Source of the DNA: Macrostomum hystrix | Taxonomy: Eukaryota > Animalia > Platyhelminthes | Length of the DNA: 64,000 nucleotides | Assembly (NCBI GenBank): GCA_950097015.1 | Contig: CATNEN010000002.1 | Location: 8,928,001-8,992,000 of the forward strand | Reading direction: 5' to 3' | Shown: positions 38,476 through 52,572 of the stretch, one piece after another | How positions within the stretch are numbered: the stretch's first letter is position 1 | How the letters are laid out: every line of letters starts with the position of its first letter | The notes under the pieces: generated by a model | The model's database searches: none | Told to the model about the DNA's origin: nothing | What the model saw: the letters and a program-made list of their open reading frames with translations, nothing else | Position numbers and translations under genes: made by a program

Positions 38476-39276
38476 TACGCGCTCTTCGGTGCCATACGCA
38501 TAAAAGCAATAATACGCACTGCCACCTGTCAAATTTTAACTAATCACCTGCAAATCAATCGCGTTAAAATTAAACAGAAGCGTAAGAAAATTACAGTGGC
38601 AAGTAGAAAAAGGGATGTCACATTTCATCCTGTTAGAATTTTTTTCTTCCCAAGCAAAAATGAAAGGGTACGAGTACATGCAAAGTACAAGTGACAACCT
38701 GGACAGTCTGGAGAGAAACTTTTCACAGGTGTTAACCTGCTTTTGAGTGTCATCGGCTCTTTACAAGGCCCTCCTCGAGAGGTGAGTCGGATAAGTCACG
38801 ACTAGAAAAGAAACAAGAAATCTCCAAGAAGAGGAAGCTGCGGTAAGGCTCTGAATACCCATTCATTTGAGCCAGGTGTGTTAGCCTGCTATCGCGCTGG
38901 TAATCCTATCGATTTCTTGGATTAACCCGGCAGACCTTGCGTTGCAGAATTCGAATCCCTTTAGACTCAAGACATTCCACGTGTACGCTCTCGGGTTCGA
39001 CTCCCTATTCGCACACAGTGAAGGGTCTGGGTATTAGCTCCGTGCAGAATTACCTGTTAGTGTCAACGTACCTGCGTATACTTGTCCCGTTCCGCTGAGC
39101 ACACTCGCACACTGACATACACGCATTCACATTCACACAGGGTGTGTACACATCACCTGAATCATTCATCGTCAGGTGGTGTACACTACTGTATCACTGT
39201 ACCTTCTATAGTAGTTAGTTCTCCTAAGCAAATCAATAAATAAAAGTAAATCAATAACTTTTCCACAAAACTGCAG

Positions 39277-39897
39277 ACCGAAAGAGCTACGAAGGCATCA
39301 GAGAAGCTTTCGCTTGGAACTTTGCGTTCACTTTCCTGCGCCTCATTGTGCCTAAATTAGATGAGCGCATCAGGGCCACTCTACAAGTCGGAAATATGCT
39401 CAGTCAAAGCAAACTCAACGGCAACAGAATTCATGTAGCCCCTGAAAAAACCATAGTAGTAAAAAAATATTTCATTCTAGTTCCGGAAAAACTTGACCAA
39501 AATATTGATATGGACAAACTATTTCACGGCTGCGAGAAAAATTGTCTGCTGAAGTTTGAAGGCCTGGGCTATCAGAGAAAAGTTTTTGTGTACCTGATGG
39601 ATTTGAGCCACTCACGCCATCATCTTTGGAGATTGGGCCTCTCCAGTTTTTGCCATTAAAAAAATGGAACAAGGACAAGAAGTTCCAGAAACCAACGAGA
39701 AAATCTTCCAGCAGTTCAAGGTCGCTCAAAAGCTGATCCTGAACCACGCAAGCTTTCCCAAGCTGCTTTTCAGCAGTCAGCTTGATGCGGGCGGAGATTG
39801 TCCTAATTGGAGCTCAAATGTGGAAGTACTCGAGGTGAGCGATGGTGACAGCCTGCGACAGCGCCTGGAAAGGGAGGCTGTGAGGCTGAGGCTGTGA
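39277..39897 (+). pseudogene. STING cyclic-dinucleotide-binding-domain paralog exon, frameshifted
   Basis: EAFAWNFAFTFLRLIVPKLDERI...KYFILVPE...GLGYQRKVFVYLM, then a frame change near 39606-39612 to HAIIFGDWASPVFAIKKM...FQQFK...LILNH. It is collinear with 47959-48590. Confidence 0.8.
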
Positions 39898-42424: not shown

Positions 42425-45400
42425 ATGATGAACGCACCTGAGAACATCGAATTGCCAAGCAGCTCTGTGACTCTGCTGAGCTCTGCTATCGGTAAGTCTT
42501 GCAGCTGGAACTGGAACTGAGGACTATAATAGGCCGGTCAGGTTCAAAGGGTAAGTCTTGCAGCTGGAACTGAGGACTATAATAGGCCGGTCAGGTTCAA
42601 AGACAGGCCGCTCAATGTCTGATTTCTCGGTTACGTCAGCGGATAAGAGACGTTTCACTATAAGAGACGTTCCACTAGACTTAGATTTTCACATGCCTGC
42701 AATCAGTTAGGAAACCTACGAGCGTATTTTTCCTATCTTTGCTCCATCTGGGCGGTATGTCATAATCTCTCATTTTATGCCCTGACTTCATGTTTATTTG
42801 AGTGATTTAAGAATTGAATATTTACTGTGATTGGGCTATGTTTAGAAAAGTGGCATTGCTGGTGTACAAAAAAGTTTTTGTATATTTTGGTAAGAATAAA
42901 TCTCATGTTACTGTTTTGAGAGCAACCTCAAACTGTACAGAGTCCGATTTGTGAAACTTGGGTTAGTTTTTAAACAATTACTAAAACAAATTCCCAACTA
43001 AAGTATGCAATTTCTACTATTTTAGTACAAGCCTCTACCAAAGTTTGATCAGGTTCGCTAACCTCAGATTTACCAGGTTAGCGTGTTTTGCTGCCGCATC
43101 CATTTCTTTTCCATTTTCTTGTACTTTTTCAGTACTTATTGACGGTGACTACCGCACAGTCAACGTCGCTTTGATTGTGGTCGGAGGAGCCAACGATGCC
43201 AGCAGAGAATTGGAAGACGAAATCAAAAATGGCTTCAGATATGTAGTTTCCGCCAGGGGCGACACAAAGGAGTATCGCATTGTTAAAGTCAGCCGACAGG
43301 ACAACCTGGAGGACTGGGCTAGTGTTGTGGAGCTGGTGTACAACTCTGATGCCATTGTGATTCTGTTCAACCAGAAGCCAGCGGTGTATGTTCAGCCTCT
43401 CCTGCTACTGACGATGAAGCGGGTAATGCCTCCGGGAGCAGGAACTGCTGGATGCCTAAAATTTTAGTATTTTCGGTTGATCGAACAGACACACTGGGTG
43501 ATCTCACCTTCCGCTCATCAAATTGTGTCGCACTATAAAGCAGTAGACATAAAAAGACAAAATCCTGGCAATTTTCAAAGGGCCATCATCTACCGCGATG
43601 ATTAGTTTCTTAGCTGCAATATTTGCTGTGGCTGTTGAAGGGGCTTTAAGAATATCGGTTACGACTTCGGACTCTCGACTTAAGCAGTTGGATTCCAGAC
43701 TTCACTGGAACAAAATTTGGCTTCTAGCAAGACACTCAACTCTTCACTGCTTGAGTTCAGACAGCTGCTGATTGGACATCGGCATAGCTGGGATAGCTGG
43801 AATTGCTGAGATTGCTGATAGCTGGGATTGCTGATAGCTGGGATAGCTGGAATTGCTGGAATAGCTGGGATAGCTGGAATAGCAGGAATAGCTAGGATTG
43901 CTGATAGCTCGGATAGCTTGGATAGCTTGGATAGCTATGATTGCTTAGATTGCTGGGATAGCCGAGATAGCTGGGATAGCTGGAATTGCTTAAATAGCTG
44001 GGATTGCTGGAATAGCTGGGATAGCTGGAATAGCAGGAATAGCTAGGATAGCTGGGATAGCTGGGATTGCTAAGATAGCTGGGATAGCTGGAATTGCTGA
44101 AATAGCTTGGATTGCTGGAATAGCTGAGATAGCTGGGATAGCTGGAATAGCTGGGATGTCTGTGATAGCTTGCACTCTGGGATTGCTTGGATGTCTGTGA
44201 TAGCTTGCACTCTGGGATTGCTTGGATGTCTGTGATAGCTTGCACTCTGGGATTGCTTGGATGTCTGGGATAGCTTGCACTCTGGGATTGCTTGGATGTC
44301 TGTGATAGCTTGCACTCTGGGATTGCTTGGATGTCTGGGATAGCTTGCACTCTGGGATTGCTTGGATGTCTGGGATAGCTTGCACTCTGGGATTGCTTGG
44401 ATGTCTGTGATAGCTTGCACTCTGGGATTGCTTGGATGTCTGTGATAGCTTGCACTCTGGGATTGCTTGGATGTCTGTGATAGCTTGCACTCTGGGATTG
44501 CTTGCACTCTGGGATTGCTTGGATGTCTGGGATATCTAAGGGTGCAGCCTTCAGACGCGTCGCGCCATAGCTGCAGCTGTGCTGTTAACGGCATGTCTGG
44601 CCTAATTTAGGGAACGCAAAATGAATTATGATTGCATTTCCGTATTAACATTAAGGTTAGTATTATTTGGGGGAGAACTGTTAAGGAACTAATATTCAGA
44701 AATTAAATTTCTAGCGCGTATCGACCAGAGGAGTTCAAGTGTACGTTGTGGACAACATGGCTTCCCGAACTCAGGCAGGAGAGACAAAGCCGCTTGACCT
44801 TCTGCAGCACCCGAAAGTTCTCGACCACATCCGGTCCGTTGTGAAGTTGACCAATGAAGATTATAAAAAAAAGTTCGAAAGCTTGGTAGCGGAAGTCCGG
44901 GCCGGCATCGAAGGTGCTCAAGGTGAGAATACTAATTCTATCAATTGCGTAGCAGGAGCACTGGTTAATAACCAAAATGATGTGGAACATTTTTGCTGCT
45001 ACAAAGCTTGCCGGACCAGTACCAGGTGCGCTTTTTCTTCACAAGCTTTGGTTCGCATCGCAGCATTTAAATAACAGTCAGGACTCTTATCCTTCCTCTC
45101 TTCCACTTCTCCTTTACTTCTCCTTTCTCTCTGTGCTTGTTTACGCTCGCCCCTCCTATTGTACTTTCTCCTCTCTCCCTCTTTCTTTCAACTTCTTAGC
45201 AAACCTTCAACTCTCTTTCCGCTCCCTCGTCTCTGATTGGCTAGCTGTTCGTCTCTCTTTCCTCACCCGTCCTTTCCAGCTCTTTCCCTCTGACCCGTCC
45301 TCACTCCTTTTACCCTTCAGCCCCTTCCTATCTCTGGTTAATATATTTGATTCTCGGCACATAGGGCTGGTGCCTGCCGCTGTTCGATTCGTTCAGTGCC

Positions 45401-48400
45401 GAAAATACAGTGAATCACTGCGAAGGCTCCAATATTTATTGAAGTCAACACAAGGGCTGCTAAACTGGAAGGATACAAAACACAGGGGCTGCTAAACTGG
45501 AAGGATACAAAACACAAGGGCTGCTAAACTGGAAGGATACAAACACAAGGGCTGCTAAACTGGAAGGATACAAAACACAAGGGCTGCTAAACTGGAAGGA
45601 TACAAAACACAAGGGCTGCTAAACTGGAAGGATACAAAACACAAGGGCTGCTAAACTGGAAGGATACAAAACACAAGGGCTGCTAAACTGGAAGGATACA
45701 AAACACAAGGGCTGCTAAACTGGAAGGATACAAAACACAAGGGCTGCTAAACTGGAAGGATACAAAACACAAGAGCTGCTAAACTGGAAGGATACAAAAC
45801 ACAAGGGCTGCTAAACTGGAAGGATACAAAACACAAGGGCTGCTAAACTGGAAGGATACAAAACACAAGGGCTGCTAAACTGGAAGGATACAAAACACAA
45901 GAGCTGCTAAACTGGAAGGATACAAAACACAAGGGCTGCTAAACTGGAAGGATACAAAACACAAGGGCTGCTAAACTGGAAGGATACAAAACACAAGGGC
46001 TGCTAAACTGGAAGGATACAAAACACAAGGGCTGCTAAACTGGAAGGATACAAAACACAAGGGCTGCTAAACTGGAAGGATACAAAACACAAGGGCTGCT
46101 AAACTGGAAGGATACAAAACACAAGGGCTGCTAAACTGGAAGGATACAAAACACAAGGGCTGCTAAACTGGAAGGATACAAAACACAAGGGCTGCTAAAC
46201 TGGAAGGATACAAAACACAAGGGCTGCTAAACTGGAAGGATACAAAACACAAGGCTCTCAATTCGTAGAAAAATACTTAAAAGCCAGCTTTTTAAGTGAA
46301 ATGCATGGACTGGACGGCAAATTTCAGGTCATCGAGCAAATTCAACACAGAATTGAGTTCACCAGTTATAAAATGGGGTAGCAGCATCAGCTGGGGAAAA
46401 GTTGGCTGGGGTGGCGCCCTCCCTCTTGACTGGACAGTTGGATTTCAAACGTGAGTTTCCTTGTTTATTATCGGTACTATATTGTGGCGCTGTTAAAAAG
46501 CACAAATGTACAGCATTTTCAATCAATTTCTGGCTTGAAACCTGCTGCGTATCGCAGACTAAAGTTCAGACCTGCTGCTGTCTCACATGGCTTACAGTAT
46601 ATTAAATTTGGTTCAGATAAACTGCCGTTTTTTATTTTCTCAATGAATTTTTCGCTTATAGCTCGTAAATGGCCCTCAACTAATTGTTCTACGAATATAA
46701 CAGGTTCTACTCTACCTGTTAGAGAGTATACAGGTTGCTTGCCTTCTCTCTCCCAGCTACAGCAGTAGATAGAAATTAACGCACTGGATTTAGAGGCCTA
46801 ATTCTGAGTATAGTGAGGCTCACATTCTCAGGCTGCAGTGTGCAGGAAAACAGCTTTTACGAGTGTACTTTATTGCCAAACTCATTGATTGTGTTAAAAG
46901 GAAAATATGGTTAGGGTTAGTCTAGTTCGCATGAGCGGCTTACTTACTTAATTGCAGGGGGGCCTGGGGCACTTGACGCACAAGCGCAGGAACGGCATGC
47001 CCCCAGGCCGGCGAACTAGGCGGGAGTCGCCCATCGCGCCATCTAGACCCCTGAACACAGGCACCTCATACACAGCCGCAAGCCAAGCGGGGAAGGGGGC
47101 AGCAGCCGGAGTGCCTCTCACCCCCAGGCCCGCACACGCACAGAGCTGACCAAACCAGGGGAGGACTTATATGCCTGAAGGGTAGGGACGAGAGGACCAA
47201 GCCACGCGCGCAGACGGCTGGTGAAACCTCGCCGCTCAGAGCACGCAAGGCTGGTGCACACCCGCCCCACCCCCCATACAACGCCTCACACCCGGCCCAA
47301 CGCACAAACACAAACACAAACAAGCAGGCACACAGAAGGCAGGAGCGAAGCTATTATTTCAAGCTTTGATTGCACGAAATATGGTGCACCTCCGCCGGTC
47401 GCTACTGTCCAAACCCCCCAACAAGTCCCGAAATTAATCGTGACTTGAAGGGTGAATCGAACTAGCGTCCTTTGGAGTGCGAGGCAGCGACGTTAGCCGC
47501 TGACCCACTCGCCCCCTCGCATGAGCGGCATTCTACAAAGGCATTTGTCTCCTCTCGCGTTGCTAGGCTAGTTCTCTTTCCAACGAAGAATAACCAAAGC
47601 GCCATTTCGCGACGCAGCTAGGACGCGTTGGCCCCTCGGTCTTAGCTCCATTGTTCGAAGGACATCGAGTTTAGCAAGACCTCTGGTTATGACTGCTTGG
47701 CCAGTTTGAATGCTGGGTGGGGCCATTCCAGTGTCAGAGAATGTCAGCGAAATCCAAGCGCTTTCAGAGAGCCATCTGTCCTTGTACTTTCGTAGCCCTT
47801 CAGTAGAGCTCACATTAGTGGACCAGCTAAAATATTTGTCAACAACGAGGAAAACGTGCTATGACATAATATGATAACAAGGATTCTGAAGCGATGACTT
47901 TCTGCGACACAGCTTACAACAAAAACATAATCAAAAGCTGCTTAAAAACCTGCTCCAGATCCGGCGAGCCATGCGAGCACCGGAGAAGCTTTCGCCTGGA
48001 ATTTCGCCACATCCTTCCTGCGTCTCATTGTGCCCAACCTGGAGACTCGGATCACAGAAGCTCTCTATGATGGCGATCATCTCAGTGAGAGCAAGCTGAG
48101 CAGCGTGGGAATTCAACTGCCACCTGAAAGAATTATTGTGCTCAAAAATTATTTCGTGCTTGCTCCGGACAGACTGGGTCAAGACGTCAGTCCGGACGTC
48201 CTGTTCCCTGGTTGCGTGAAAACTGGGATTTTGTATTTCGATGGCCTTGGCTATCAAAGAAAAGTGTTCATCTACTTGATGGAGCTGGATCAAAGAACAC
48301 CTTCAGGAGAGACGCACGCTGTCATCTTCGCCGACTGGGCCTCCCCGATCTTCGCCATGCGAGACATGAGCGTTGAAGCATCGCAAGGACTGGACATTGT

Positions 48401-50664
48401 TAAAGTTCGAGAGGAAATGTTCGGTCAGTTCAAGAATGCCCTGAAAATGATCATCTACCATCCTTACTTTCCAAGGCTGATTTTCAGCAATCCAGAGAGC
48501 CACATCAGCACTGAGCAGAGCTCAAAGGTGGCGCTGGTTGAGGTGGCCAGCAAAGAGAGTCTGAAAATGTGCATGAACAATGAAAGCAGGAGCTTTGTTG
48601 CCCAACCCCAGGCGAAGAATGCGAGTTTAGGTGGAATGGCGTTTGGGTCAAAGTTTTCTATGGAATGCGCAAATCTGCATCATCTGCTCGTAGCAATGAG
48701 CAGCTCCCTTAGCAATCAGACGGACGCACTTAAGATGGCACTGGATTCCAGACTACCTGGCAGGTACGAACTTTCGGCAGTTAACGATTTGCAATTTGAG
48801 CATTTGCAACAATTCCGGAGAAGTCTTCTTGTGCTGAGTCCTGAGGACTTGAGAGGCACCGAGAATAATAAAGTCACCGCTGCTGCTGAAAAGGTGAGTC
48901 TGTTCAATGCTAACTGTAAGGGTTTGGCAAAGCGGGGCAAGCACTGAGTGGACACCCGCACCAGCCAATCAGATGACCAGCGCCCACACCCCATTCTGGC
49001 TCGGCTACGCAAATTCACGTTGAGAGACTTCAGTCTAGATCGCCGAACTTCTAACCGAAAATTCAGGAGTTCGAAACAAGATATTTCGCCCTGCAGCTGT
49101 GAAATGGGAACGAGAACTAGCTGGTGTAGATAGAGCTTAGGGGATGTGCCAGCGCCTCCTGTCCATAGAGCCGTACGCTGCATTTGAATGCACCACAAAA
49201 GATGCGGCTGTGCCACTGGTTGAGTATCTTCTGGGTTCTGTATGAACCTGTCAACTTCTCAATGCCAGATAAAAATGCATCAATATCTTGTGCTTTCATT
49301 TCAGATGAGCATGACTGGCGAGTGCTGCGTTTCCGTCATCATTGTGGGAGACTTCGGAGTTGGCATTGAAGCTGTCCACGACGTCCTGCCGGATCGGCTG
49401 AGATGCCTGCCCTACTGCTGCGTGGCAGGCGTGCGAACTCTGACTGGCGACAACGTTGAAGGCAGGCTGCCCTTCGGACAGCAGCTGCGAACTCTTGCTG
49501 ACGTCATCGATGGCCTTCGTAAGTTGAAGTAACTGATTGTCGTAAATATTTGTTATTTTTTTGACCATTTATAAACACCTGCGCTCTATTACTCTAGACA
49601 AATTGTTTAGAATCTTGTCGTTTATCACTCTCCATTCAAATTTGCTGTGACTAAATTTCAGGTCTTGCAGAGGTCCACTGTCTCGAAGTTAAGGATGTTT
49701 TTCCGCTGATGTCAATGGCCAGTGTCCTGACCGCGAACATTTGCTGCGGCTTTGTCGACAAGATGGAGAAATGTGAGTTTCTTTCTGGTTTAATGGAAAC
49801 CTGACCGAATCCCATGTGGAAAATTTGTGTAGGATAAAATATTTTTCTCCTGCGATCGATTTGAAAGCGAAGTAACTGCAGTGATGCAGAGTTCCATGAA
49901 TTAAATTTTATAGGATGGATTCGACAGTCAAACGACTTCACGCTAAGGATGGGCCTCGATTAGTCGCAGAAACTGTGGCTGATTGAGATGCAAATCAACG
50001 GAAAAACGTTGGTGCAGGGCTCGAAAATTGAGCACGCTCTAATATTGCAGTGAATAGGCTGCAAAAATGTTACTCCCGATGGATTTCCACAAAGAGTATC
50101 CGAACTAAAAGTTTACTAGAAATCGGTCATATTTCTGGCCGGGGACTTATTACCATTCCACCTGCTGTACGAAACGTAGGAAACGAACTCATCCTTGATC
50201 TTGCAGACATGCGGGACGAGTCTGCTGACGAAAGTCAGCTGGCAGCTTTGCCGTTCGACAAGCCGTACTTCATGATCCTGCCTGCCAGCAATCGCTTCCA
50301 TGAGCAGAGCGCTCTGGAGCAGGGCCTGGCCGACCTTGGAGCCCAAAAAAATAACGAAAGCTTCATGGGATCCAATGGCAGGCCCTACAATTATCAAGTC
50401 TGGCACTGGCAGCATTCAAGACTGGCCTTCGAAATTCCCGGCCAGTTTTCTTACCTGCGCGAGCAGCTGAACTGGGGCTTCGCCGGACTGATCAGCCCGC
50501 AGCAGGTCGACGACATCCTGGAGGAGTTCGGACGAGGCTTGGAGGAGCACTGCAGAAATCACCGGTTTGTCAAGACTGTCAGGTGGAGCTATGAACAAGA
50601 AGGCGCTGCTGGTTTGCTCCAGCTGCTGAAGTCTTTGAGGCATCCACCACTTAAGGATGATTAA
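42425..50664 (+). CDS. Tandem TIR-like/STING/TIR-like/STING protein (~812 aa, no transmembrane region); exons 42425-42491, 43133-43422, 44715-44922, 47959-48893, 49305-49518, 49662-49772, 50051-50664
   Basis: All six introns are GT-AG with matching phases (1,0,1,0,1,1). The joined CDS is 2439 nt with no internal stop. Two segments align by eye to the STING ligand-binding domain, and two alpha/beta segments have TIR-like strand-helix periodicity. Confidence 0.72.
43785..44535. repeat. 9-bp (GGGATAGCT-type) and 35-bp (GATAGCTTGCACTCTGGGATTGCTTGGATGTCTGT) minisatellites in intron 2 of the STING gene
   Basis: Visible arrays, followed by a 3' SINE fragment at ~44545-44610. Confidence 0.93.
45451..46255. 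repeat. 32-bp minisatellite (CAAGGGCTGCTAAACTGGAAGGATACAAAACA)n, ~25 copies, intron 3
   Basis: Visible near-perfect array. Confidence 0.95.
46940..47520 (-). mobile_element. Probable second tRNA-derived SINE family
   Basis: The minus strand starts GGGGCGAGTGGGTCAGCGGCTAACGTCGCTGCCTCGCACTCCAAAGGACGCTAGTTCGATTC (A/B-box-like) and ends in (TAAG)n. Confidence 0.45.
47959..48590 (+). other. STING-like domain 1
   Basis: GEAFAWNFATSFLRLIVPNLETRI vs human STING [31 protein letters not shown] vs RLYILLP; FADWASPIFAMRDM vs VLEYATPLQTLFAM; VREEMFGQFKNALKMII vs [17 protein letters not shown]. Confidence 0.85.
49700..50664 (+). other. STING-like domain 2 (split by one intron)
   Basis: SMASVLTANICCGFV (first helix, in exon 49662-49772); KPYFMILP; MGSNGRPYNYQVW vs AGIKDRVYSNSIY; LAFEIPGQF vs VLEYATPL; FAGLISPQQVDDILEEFGRGLEEH vs [22 protein letters not shown]. 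Confidence 0.7.
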
Positions 50665-50726
50665 TATTTGAAGACACTGTAGCGTGCCTTTGACAATGCT
50701 ACAGATGACAAACAAAAATGCTCCGC

Positions 50727-50921
50727 TTATTCCTTTCTATCCCCAGAGAGTCTTTGTTTTAGAACGTCTTTATTCTTAAGCCATGACTTAACTCGTTGAC
50801 GAGATAAATGTTTTATCAACGTTTTTTCTATTTTTACATTTTTGTGATAAACTTCAGCGCCCCCTCTTGTTAACTCTTGCTGTAATTTTTCTTCATTATG
50901 ATTGACAAGATCTAAATTCAA
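50727..50921 (-). pseudogene. Possible pogo/Tigger (CENP-B/psq-type) HTH remnant
   Basis: KHLSRQRVKSWLKNKDVL resembles the HTH recognition helix. The match is short and weak. Confidence 0.3.
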
Positions 50922-51499
50922 CTAGCATTGACATTGCTTGACGCCTCTATACTCCATTGGGGGAGCAGACGATAAATTAAAAAAAATATTAATACTTTTG
51001 CTGCACTGTTATTCAACGGTCTAAATACTCCGATCTAATCTATACACCTTTACACAGGAAGTTTTAGTAACTTTGTTTCTTGCCAAAATACGAGCTATTT
51101 TAGCAAATCTTGATCATTTTCGCGCAAAGAACATTAGACCTGCGATTTGTTTTAACATCACCATTAATTCGCCACTTATTTTACTTTTATTTTGTTGAAG
51201 CCCCTGTTCAAACTCAGTCGGACTCCCATTGTGAGACCATTTCGGTGTCAGGTTTCGTAACTTTTTTATGGATGAAGTACTCATATTTACCTTTTATTTA
51301 TATTTATTCATATTCTCCTACTGTTTATGCATACATGCGAACATTATCGCTCTACCTGCAGATTGAATAGCTAAGAAATCAAATATCGAGGTGGTCTGGA
51401 TTTTCGAGCGGGAGAGGGCACCACCCGTCTTAGGGGGTGACATTTAAGGGTTGGGGGTTACCATTTGAGATCTGGGAGCGCCAGGAGGAATCGCCAACG

Positions 51500-52095
51500 T
51501 GGATTAGAGAGGGGTTGCCACTGGGTATTTGGGAGCGCCACCGTGAATTTGAGTTAGCCCCACTGGGTATTTGGGAGCACCACCGTGAATTTGAGTTAGC
51601 CCCACTGGGTATTTGGGAGCGCCACCGTGACTTTAAGTTAGCCCCACTGGGTATTTGGGAGCGCCACCGTGACTTTGAGGGGGTCACCACTAGGTATTTG
51701 GGAGCGCCACTGTGGATTTTAGAGGGTCACCACTGGGTATTTGGGAGCGCCACCGTGGATTTTTAGAGGGTCACCACTGGGTATTTGGGAGCGCCACCGT
51801 GGATTTTTAGAGGGTCACCACTGGGTATTTGGGAGCGCCACCGTGGATTTTTAGAGGGTCACCACTGGGTATTTGGGAGCACCATCGTGAATTTGAGTTA
51901 GCCCCACTGGGTATTTGGGAGCACCATCGTGAATTTGAGTTTGCCCCACTGGGTATTTGGGAGCACCATCGTGAATTTGAGTTAGCCCCACTGGGTATTT
52001 GGGAGCACCATCGTGAATTTGAGTTAGCCCCACTGGGTATTTGGGAGCACCATCGTGAATTTGAGTTAGCTCCACTGGGTATTTGGGAGCGCCAC
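51500..52095. repeat. 42-44-bp minisatellite (CCACTGGGTATTTGGGAGC...) inside a GC-ended MITE-like segment
   Basis: Visible array. The right end CCCCCCTGGCTACGGTCCTG (~52152) resembles hAT MITE ends. Confidence 0.85.
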
Positions 52096-52572
52096 CGAAG
52101 ATAACGGTGAGTTAATGTGGATCGCCCCCCCTGCCCCCCTGGCTACGGTCCTGACGCAAGTACATGTCAATAAATTTTCGGTCCAATAAGGGATTGAAGA
52201 AATTTAGCAAATCGCATTGTCTCTCGTGTCAGTTACTCAGTACACAGAATGTCGCTTTCAGTGTGCTGTCGCAGGGCAAAAAGTCATATTGAAATTTACA
52301 TTTTTGGCGTAATGAATATTTTTACTCTTATTTCGATCATTAGATCAATAATAGTTGTGACAAGAATGCAAAAACGACCAAAAAACATTTGGGCACAATG
52401 ATTGACAAGCCAAGATGAACTATTTGCATTGGTTCCATTTATTCCAGGTGGATACGTACAATTATCCACCTACGTAGTCAGTCTTTCGCTTTCTATTTTC
52501 CTATTTAGTCTACCAGCAGGCAAAATTAGCTTGGCAGCACGTGGTAAGTGCATTGTCGCCGCAGCTGTCCGG

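Follow-up and report, generated by a model that had tools for sequence, protein, structure and literature searches.

A Macrostomum gene predicted to join two diverged STING domains in one soluble receptor chain

The stretch analysed here, called the window below, comprises 64,000 nucleotides of DNA from the flatworm Macrostomum hystrix (bases 8928001–8992000 of contig C2, in a eukaryotic genome of 220 Mb in 42 contigs) and carries a gene whose products are predicted, by homology and structure modelling, to contain two STING ligand-binding domains (LBDs) flanking a TIR/SEFIR-like domain. On the + strand, the open reading frame (ORF) listing contains long open pieces at 47946–48944 and 50032–50661, with shorter ones between them, and four exons were placed in this stretch: A (47959–48893), B (49305–49518), C (49662–49772), and D (50207–50664, ending in TAA). 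All splice sites are canonical and the frame is unbroken across exons A to D. Bases 50050–50206 of the long ORF ending at 50664 are intronic, and domain 2 is divided between exons C and D, with its helix alpha-1 lying in the 111-base exon C. The start (47959) and the end (50664) assigned to the double-STING segment in the initial annotation are both exact, and each of the motifs quoted there (the alpha-1 F, QRKVF, DWASP, NGRPYNY, and AFEIPG) is present at window coordinates. Residues are compared below with human STING positions Y167, R238, Y240, E260, and T263. The features of the gene are as follows.

44715–44922, + strand: 3′ part of the preceding coding exon, in frame 0 and joined to 47959 by a phase-1 splice (last bases read by the loose end that an X6 contig shows before 47951; GT at 44923, AG at 47957–47958).
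47959–48893, + strand: exon A, encoding STING domain 1 (about 47973–48490) and then the N-terminal half of a TIR/SEFIR-like alpha/beta domain (about 48680–48893) (contig joints; profile matches to PDB STING chains).
47991–48035, + strand: helix alpha-1 of domain 1, FAWNFATSFLRLIVP, with N (48000–48002) at S162 and F (48015–48017) at Y167 (HMMER alignments to human, coral, and oyster STING; gapless mapping).
48249–48275, + strand: lid and strand beta-3 of domain 1, G-Y-Q-R-K-V-F-I-Y (family alignment; register against R238/Y240 ambiguous).
48330–48347, + strand: A-D-W-A-S-P of domain 1, with D (48333–48335) at E260 and S (48342–48344) at T263 (HMMER alignments; family table).
48894–49304, + strand: intron, GT..AG (joint of 48891/3 to 49303/5 in three runs; splice dinucleotides).
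49305–49518, + strand: exon B, encoding the remaining half of the TIR/SEFIR-like middle domain.
49519–49661, + strand: intron, GT..AG (contig joint; splice dinucleotides).
49662–49772, + strand: exon C, helix alpha-1 of domain 2, TANICCGFV at 49730–49756, with N (49736–49738) at S162, G (49748–49750) at G166, and F (49751–49753) at Y167.
49773–50206, + strand: intron, holding the open-frame stretch 50050–50206 before exon D (joint of 49772 to 50207 in four runs; paralogue matches start near the boundary).
50207–50664, + strand: exon D, strand beta-1 to helix alpha-5 of domain 2 and the stop codon (50662–50664) (contig joint; family alignment).
50374–50394, + strand: NGRPYNY of domain 2, with R at 50380–50382 and Y at 50386–50388.
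50425–50442, + strand: AFEIPG of domain 2, with E at 50431–50433 and G (50440–50442) at T263.

Contigs from public runs covering 46300–51400 contain the GT..AG joints 48891/3 to 49303/5, 49518 to 49662, and 49772 to 50207, and the loose end of the X6 contig links 44922 to 47959. Runs X4–X6 contain 43–48% of the exact 31-mers of the window. Their spliced contigs differ from the window at 19 listed bases and by a 3-base deletion, and all 19 diagnostic bases as well as the deletion match paralogue L017 (C2:9049693–9050670; 95.8% identical to window exon A), which rules these contigs out as expression of the window copy. Since the contigs carry L017 bases, the joints prove splicing and presence in RNA-like assemblies for L017, and the exon structure of the window gene is assigned by its homology to this spliced paralogue, whose splice sites and frames it shares. 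A window-specific base (T at 48149) occurs in only one X6 contig, at a depth of 56, and transcription of the window copy is likely, if unproven.

Domain 1 is linked to known STINGs through its first helix. A profile of 13 exon-A-like sequences matched 78–87 PDB STING chains and essentially nothing else (best E of 2.5e-4), with the signal coming mainly from helix alpha-1, which aligns unambiguously to human STING (N to S162, F to Y163, and F to Y167), and with weak second pieces setting (f)-a-D-W/Y-A-S/A-P on (L/V)-E-Y-A-T/S-P. The best family member on Pfam STING_LBD (PF15009), paralogue L021, scored 25.4 bits, below the gathering cut-off of 27 bits; the window exons had no STING_LBD match at E ≤ 1, domain 2 was never matched by this profile in any search, and single-exon sequence searches of Pfam and PDB returned nothing. 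A word-indexed search with the domain-1 alignment was also blank, its length window and word limit leaving out most relatives. Sequence comparison nevertheless identifies domain 1 as a STING domain.

The fold evidence for both halves was obtained with the homologue P0001, a complete protein of 582 amino acids from Macrostomum lignano (the other complete homologue, P0008, has 712). A model of P0001:150–582, which comprises the two STING domains and was built from 22 aligned family sequences and exon pieces, has a mean predicted local distance difference test (pLDDT) score of 81.7 and a predicted template modelling (pTM) score of 0.81, and Foldseek with this model returned 105 STING chains at E ≤ 1e-3. 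The STING LBD element order, alpha1-beta1-alpha2-beta2-beta3-beta4-alpha3-alpha4-beta5-alpha5, was recovered, and domain 2 of the model shows it in full from alpha-1 to alpha-5. As window exons A, C, and D align to the modelled regions of P0001 (tblastn E of 6e-24, 0.03, and 4e-14, respectively), both halves of the window protein are assigned as STING LBDs by homology to a predicted structure. The fold matches contradict a chance origin of the manual alignment to human STING on which the initial annotation was built. A shape search of the ESM Atlas with the two-domain model found no tandem-STING cluster, its top row being a bacterial Cap12 with a TM score of 0.29, and a HMMER search of 1.84 billion cluster representatives with the domain-2 profile yielded only three matches, all from M. 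lignano and none a canonical STING. Between domains 1 and 2 no similarity was detectable (BLASTP E of 34; hhalign probability below 1%); the best, non-significant hhalign piece sets alpha-1 on alpha-1, in the same register as used here.

The register of helix alpha-1 is consistent between approaches: in each half of P0001, gapless mapping pairs Y167 with F and G166 with G, and MAFFT, without being set up for it, placed the exon-C pieces in the same register. In domain 2, a constant offset of 91 ties alpha-4 (F291), alpha-3, and E260 to the E of A-F-E-I-P, and R-x-Y forms the start of beta-3. Domain 2 retains the aromatic residue at position 167, R-x-Y, and the E at position 260, as initially annotated, and these residues are invariant or nearly so in the 12 sequences compared: R (alignment column 58) is present in all, Y (column 60) in 11, with F once, and E (column 75) in 11, with M in paralogue L007. 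The T263 position of domain 2 is variable (G, T, A, P, or V), the set of the window copy being F, R, Y, E, and G, and both domain types have F at Y167 without exception. Paralogue L007 (C2:9060744–9061193 plus its exon C) combines the M at E260 with D at G166 of domain 2, and its pocket may be degenerating or re-specialised. Elsewhere in exon D, the window copy has H at residue 31 (50299–50301), where the other ten family exon-D sequences have Pro (N-R-F-H-E-Q versus N-R-F-P-E/D-Q).

For domain 1, HMMER alignments to coral and oyster STING set D/G on E260 and A-S/A-P on A-T-P. The clade of the window copy, on contigs C2 and C7, has N, F, and F on alpha-1, G-Y-Q/E-R-K-V-F-I/V-Y in the lid, and D-W-A-S-P; the clades of C39, C38, and M. 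lignano have Q, L/Y, and F, then Y/F-x-K-x-(V/I/M)-x-x-Y, and G-Y/F-A-A/P-P. In the lid, the Y, the basic residue two positions on, and the last Y are kept family-wide, and K-V-F is specific to the window clade. Each domain type keeps invariant residues of its own; in domain 1, about 18 columns do not vary, among them F at Y167, the A-W Trp, the Tyr of G-Y, the basic residue at +2, and the beta-4 His. Three approaches to the lid register gave three answers, with K-V-F, Y-x-R, or none at the lid R/Y positions: a 2-bit HMMER piece against coral STING sets the G-Y Tyr on Y240, the I-Y anchor sets it on R238, and the beta-3/beta-4 hairpin pairing, read from the DSSP string of the model against the model's own domain 2, puts K-V-F opposite the domain-2 R-x-Y. 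We consider the hairpin register the best supported of the three, and under it the window's domain 1 would reproduce the canonical set conservatively, as F, K, F, D, and S. Of the domain-1 residues listed in the initial annotation, F at position 167 and D-W-A-S-P for E-Y-A-T-P stand, and QRKVF is present but in an ambiguous lid register. The strong pocket asymmetry described there is real but overstated for the window copy: the replacements of E260 by D and of T263 by S are conservative, and, because F is kept as well and K-V-F would replace R-V-Y under the hairpin register, the asymmetry is conservative in the window clade and strong in the clades with G-Y-A-A-P.

Twelve loci in the genome carry a domain-1-type (type-1) match with a domain-2-type (type-2) match lying 0.3 to about 6 kb downstream of it, namely, the window copy and six others on C2, one on C7, one on C38, and three on C39, and the M. 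lignano proteins have the same order, type 1 and then type 2. Neither type occurs alone, apart from one frameshifted type-1 relic. Because the two types are distinct in all 12 paralogues and in M. lignano, the internal duplication is, as judged from the sequences, older than both the family expansion and the split of the two Macrostomum species, and the earlier proposal that the poorly matching halves reflect an old duplication holds. The youngest C2 copies show a synonymous divergence (dS) of 0.01–0.09 in the STING exons and of up to 0.76 in the middle domain; compared with the window copy, paralogues L018 and L019 have a dS of 0.06–0.09 in STING-1 and of 0.47–0.76 in the middle domain. The dS against the window copy is similarly mosaic across the paralogue cluster at C2:9.046–9.106 Mb (L004–L008 and L016–L021), which suggests gene conversion between paralogues. 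Constraint is visible only at deeper divergence, and the domain-2 R, Y, and E and the F of both domains are kept among members that are 25–40% identical and in two species. A pseudogene reading of the window gene was rejected because of its four open exons and canonical splice sites.

Window positions 39276–39879 (+ strand) hold a truncated, frameshifted STING-1 exon with 86–94% protein identity to the paralogue at C2:9104091–9105023 and no exons B to D behind it, which is a pseudogene relic of the double-STING family. In the intron before exon A, contig depth reaches about 585 at 46950–47520 and many contigs continue into unrelated sequence at 46958, 47325, and 47514–47516; this segment is probably a dispersed repeat transcribed elsewhere. 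Tandem arrays at 43784–44533 (9- and 35-base units), 45447–46254 (32-base unit, 25 copies, 98% identity), and 51518–52097 (42-base unit, 13.6 copies) sit partly in introns and partly beyond the 3′ end of the gene.

P0008:372–548 is the counterpart of the exon-A tail plus exon B, and the model of this middle domain has a pLDDT of 84.3 and a pTM of 0.78. The middle domain is likely, if not decisively, a TIR/SEFIR-like fold; Atlas feature and structure look-ups for TIR-like domains gave leads only. In the complete proteins P0001 and P0008, the region ahead of STING-1 is an alpha/beta TIR-like domain, and in the window the exon that is joined to 47959 codes for a charged, helical segment. The N-terminal four-helix transmembrane domain that characterises transmembrane STING was not found. 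The architecture would be that of a doubled TIR-STING unit in one chain, of which the window encodes STING-1, the TIR/SEFIR-like domain, and STING-2. Members of the P0001 type lost the second TIR-like domain; about 25 disordered residues join their two STING domains, and in the window layout a domain of about 170 residues lies between them.

As to the source of a ligand, the sole Mab-21 match in the genome lies on contig C24 in the region 4853213–4853761 (L029 866–2221, − strand; 128.7 bits; a single open frame) and, by eye, looks like a developmental orthologue of the MAB21L1/2 type. Immune cGAS-like receptors (cGLRs) are absent from most flatworms (PMC9980059), with which a genome lacking a cGLR match agrees, and STING is absent from planarians and schistosomes (PMC13563047; PMC4117786). 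The aromatic pair and the lid Arg are common to all known STING receptors (PMC9980059).

We propose that the stretch contains the final four exons of a gene encoding a single-chain soluble immune receptor, belonging to a family specific to Macrostomum-type flatworms, in which two STING domains that arose when a TIR-STING unit was duplicated in the distant past within the gene would pair within the chain, and we give this reading a probability of about 0.5. STING-1 and STING-2 would pack like the two protomers of an ordinary STING dimer, yielding a single nucleotide pocket with two non-equivalent walls. Domain 2 would contribute the recognition set of known STINGs (the alpha-1 aromatic, the lid Arg, the lid Tyr, and Glu-260) and domain 1 an altered wall of F, D, S, and, in the window clade, probably K-V-F. 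A bound ligand would shut the lid and cause the TIR-like domains to assemble, leading to signalling. The face-to-face packing, the ligand binding, and the output through the TIR-like domains are all inferred. A pTM of 0.81 is hard to reach unless the domains are confidently placed relative to each other, and both the predicted structure and the pairing of type 1 with type 2 at all 12 loci and in M. lignano agree with a fixed pair within one chain; to this extent the heterodimeric reading of the initial annotation is partly supported.

Several observations weigh against this proposal. The STING fold was computed for the homologue P0001 and is carried to the window copy by homology, and domain 2 showed no sequence-level link to STING in Pfam, in phmmer and profile searches against PDB, in hhalign, or in the HMMER search against 1.84 billion representatives. 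Foldseek with the middle-domain model returned generic three-layer folds only and no TIR, and the TIR assignment stands only moderately above other flavodoxin-like folds. The spliced contigs derive from paralogue L017 and not from the window copy. Among the youngest copies, the ratio of nonsynonymous to synonymous divergence (dN/dS) is 0.5–1.2, with few changes to judge it by. Finally, a six-frame, exon-by-exon search of the genome, which divergent synthases could escape, found no cGLR, SMODS, or OAS-type synthase.

These and other data bear on three further explanations. Domain 1 could be a non-binding structural partner that pairs with domain 2 in the chain and merely stands in for the second protomer, so that only domain 2 contacts the ligand and each chain takes one ligand or half-ligand; R-x-Y occurs in no domain-1 sequence, and in clades other than C2/C7 the domain-1 residues are G at E260, A/P at T263, and P/T/Q where domain 2 has Tyr. 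Yet about 18 columns of domain 1 are invariant and the window clade retains the conservative pocket residues D, S, and K-V-F, so the non-binding scaffold raised in the initial annotation is weakened for the window clade and may hold for the clades with G-Y-A-A-P; overall we regard it as rather doubtful. It is unlikely that like domains pair between chains (1 with 1′ and 2 with 2′), an arrangement with two sorts of symmetric pocket in which the chains would link into a polymer. All known STINGs are homodimeric, the STING domains of the window layout stand apart by an entire domain of about 170 residues, and bacterial and oyster TIR-STINGs signal via filaments (PMC9402430); however, the pTM of the single-chain two-domain model indicates a confident intramolecular placement, the linker of P0001-type members comprises only about 25 disordered residues, and the two types are never found apart except in the frameshifted relic. 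The third explanation is a loss of nucleotide sensing, with the STING folds serving as an assembly scaffold or adaptor, or with the window copy drifting towards a pseudogene. The lack of a detected cGLR, SMODS, or OAS synthase, the dN/dS near 1 among young copies, the H that the window copy alone has at the otherwise-Pro exon-D position (P31), and the unproven expression of this copy, the spliced RNA contigs being those of L017, would all fit such a loss, but the domain-2 R, Y, and E and both F residues persist at 25–40% identity and in two species, the four exons are open with canonical splice sites, and bacterial cyclic dinucleotides could be ligands even where the host has no synthase; we regard this reading as distinctly improbable.

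Within the preferred reading of an in-chain STING pair, we tentatively suggest, as a possibility and not as an expectation, that a permanently asymmetric pocket recognises a nucleotide that is itself asymmetric or non-canonical, or directly senses bacterial cyclic dinucleotides, in a lineage without a cGAS-like synthase and thought to lack STING. To our knowledge, every STING studied is a symmetric homodimer that accommodates often asymmetric ligands. A covalently fused, non-equivalent STING pair would show how pocket asymmetry sets ligand choice and would provide a one-chain sensor of defined stoichiometry. The textbook view of STING loss in flatworms (PMC4117786; PMC13563047) is to be revised, in that the early-branching Macrostomum retains about a dozen highly diverged copies. 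With some 12 receptors and no recognisable cGLR, the question is whether microbial cyclic dinucleotides are sensed or the product of an unknown synthase.

The closest relatives of the window gene are three M. lignano proteins (PAA82216.1, PAA63807.1, and PAA82218.1), which belong to the same family and are the only matches of the domain-2 profile (E of 1.7e-47 to 5e-35). They are 25–37% identical to the window exons and 65–71% identical to the orthologous C39 copies, and their UniRef names, which are automatic annotations, include 'Stimulator of interferon genes protein' and 'SEFIR domain-containing protein'; in literature searches on tandem or double STING, Macrostomum STING, and a doubled layout in bivalves, we found no paper describing their double-STING layout. 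In the crystallised oyster (Crassostrea gigas) TIR-STING (PDB 6WT6/6WT7), each chain holds a single TIR and a single STING, and two chains make up a symmetric homodimer, whereas in the flatworm family the unit appears to be doubled in one chain, the STING copies have diverged past sequence recognition, and Pfam detects neither the TIR nor the second STING. The bacterial TIR-STING of Sphingobacterium faecium (Cap12 of the cyclic-oligonucleotide-based antiphage signalling system, CBASS; PDB 9LMQ/9LMR) is likewise a homodimer; it binds cyclic di-GMP made by an operon-encoded cGAS/DncV-like nucleotidyltransferase (CD-NTase) and has a catalytic Glu with NADase activity. By contrast, no synthase was found in the flatworm genome, and the STING folds match metazoan chains best. 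With the animal transmembrane STINGs (human, Nematostella, and coral Sp-STING1/3), both flatworm halves share, in the model, the LBD fold and element order; domain 1 has the alpha-1 motif A-W-x-x-x-x-F/Y-L-R-L-I-x-P, and domain 2 has the aromatic residue, Arg, Tyr, and Glu. Unlike transmembrane STING, the flatworm protein has neither a transmembrane domain nor a C-terminal tail, and its proposed pocket would be formed by two different domains of one chain rather than by two identical protomers.

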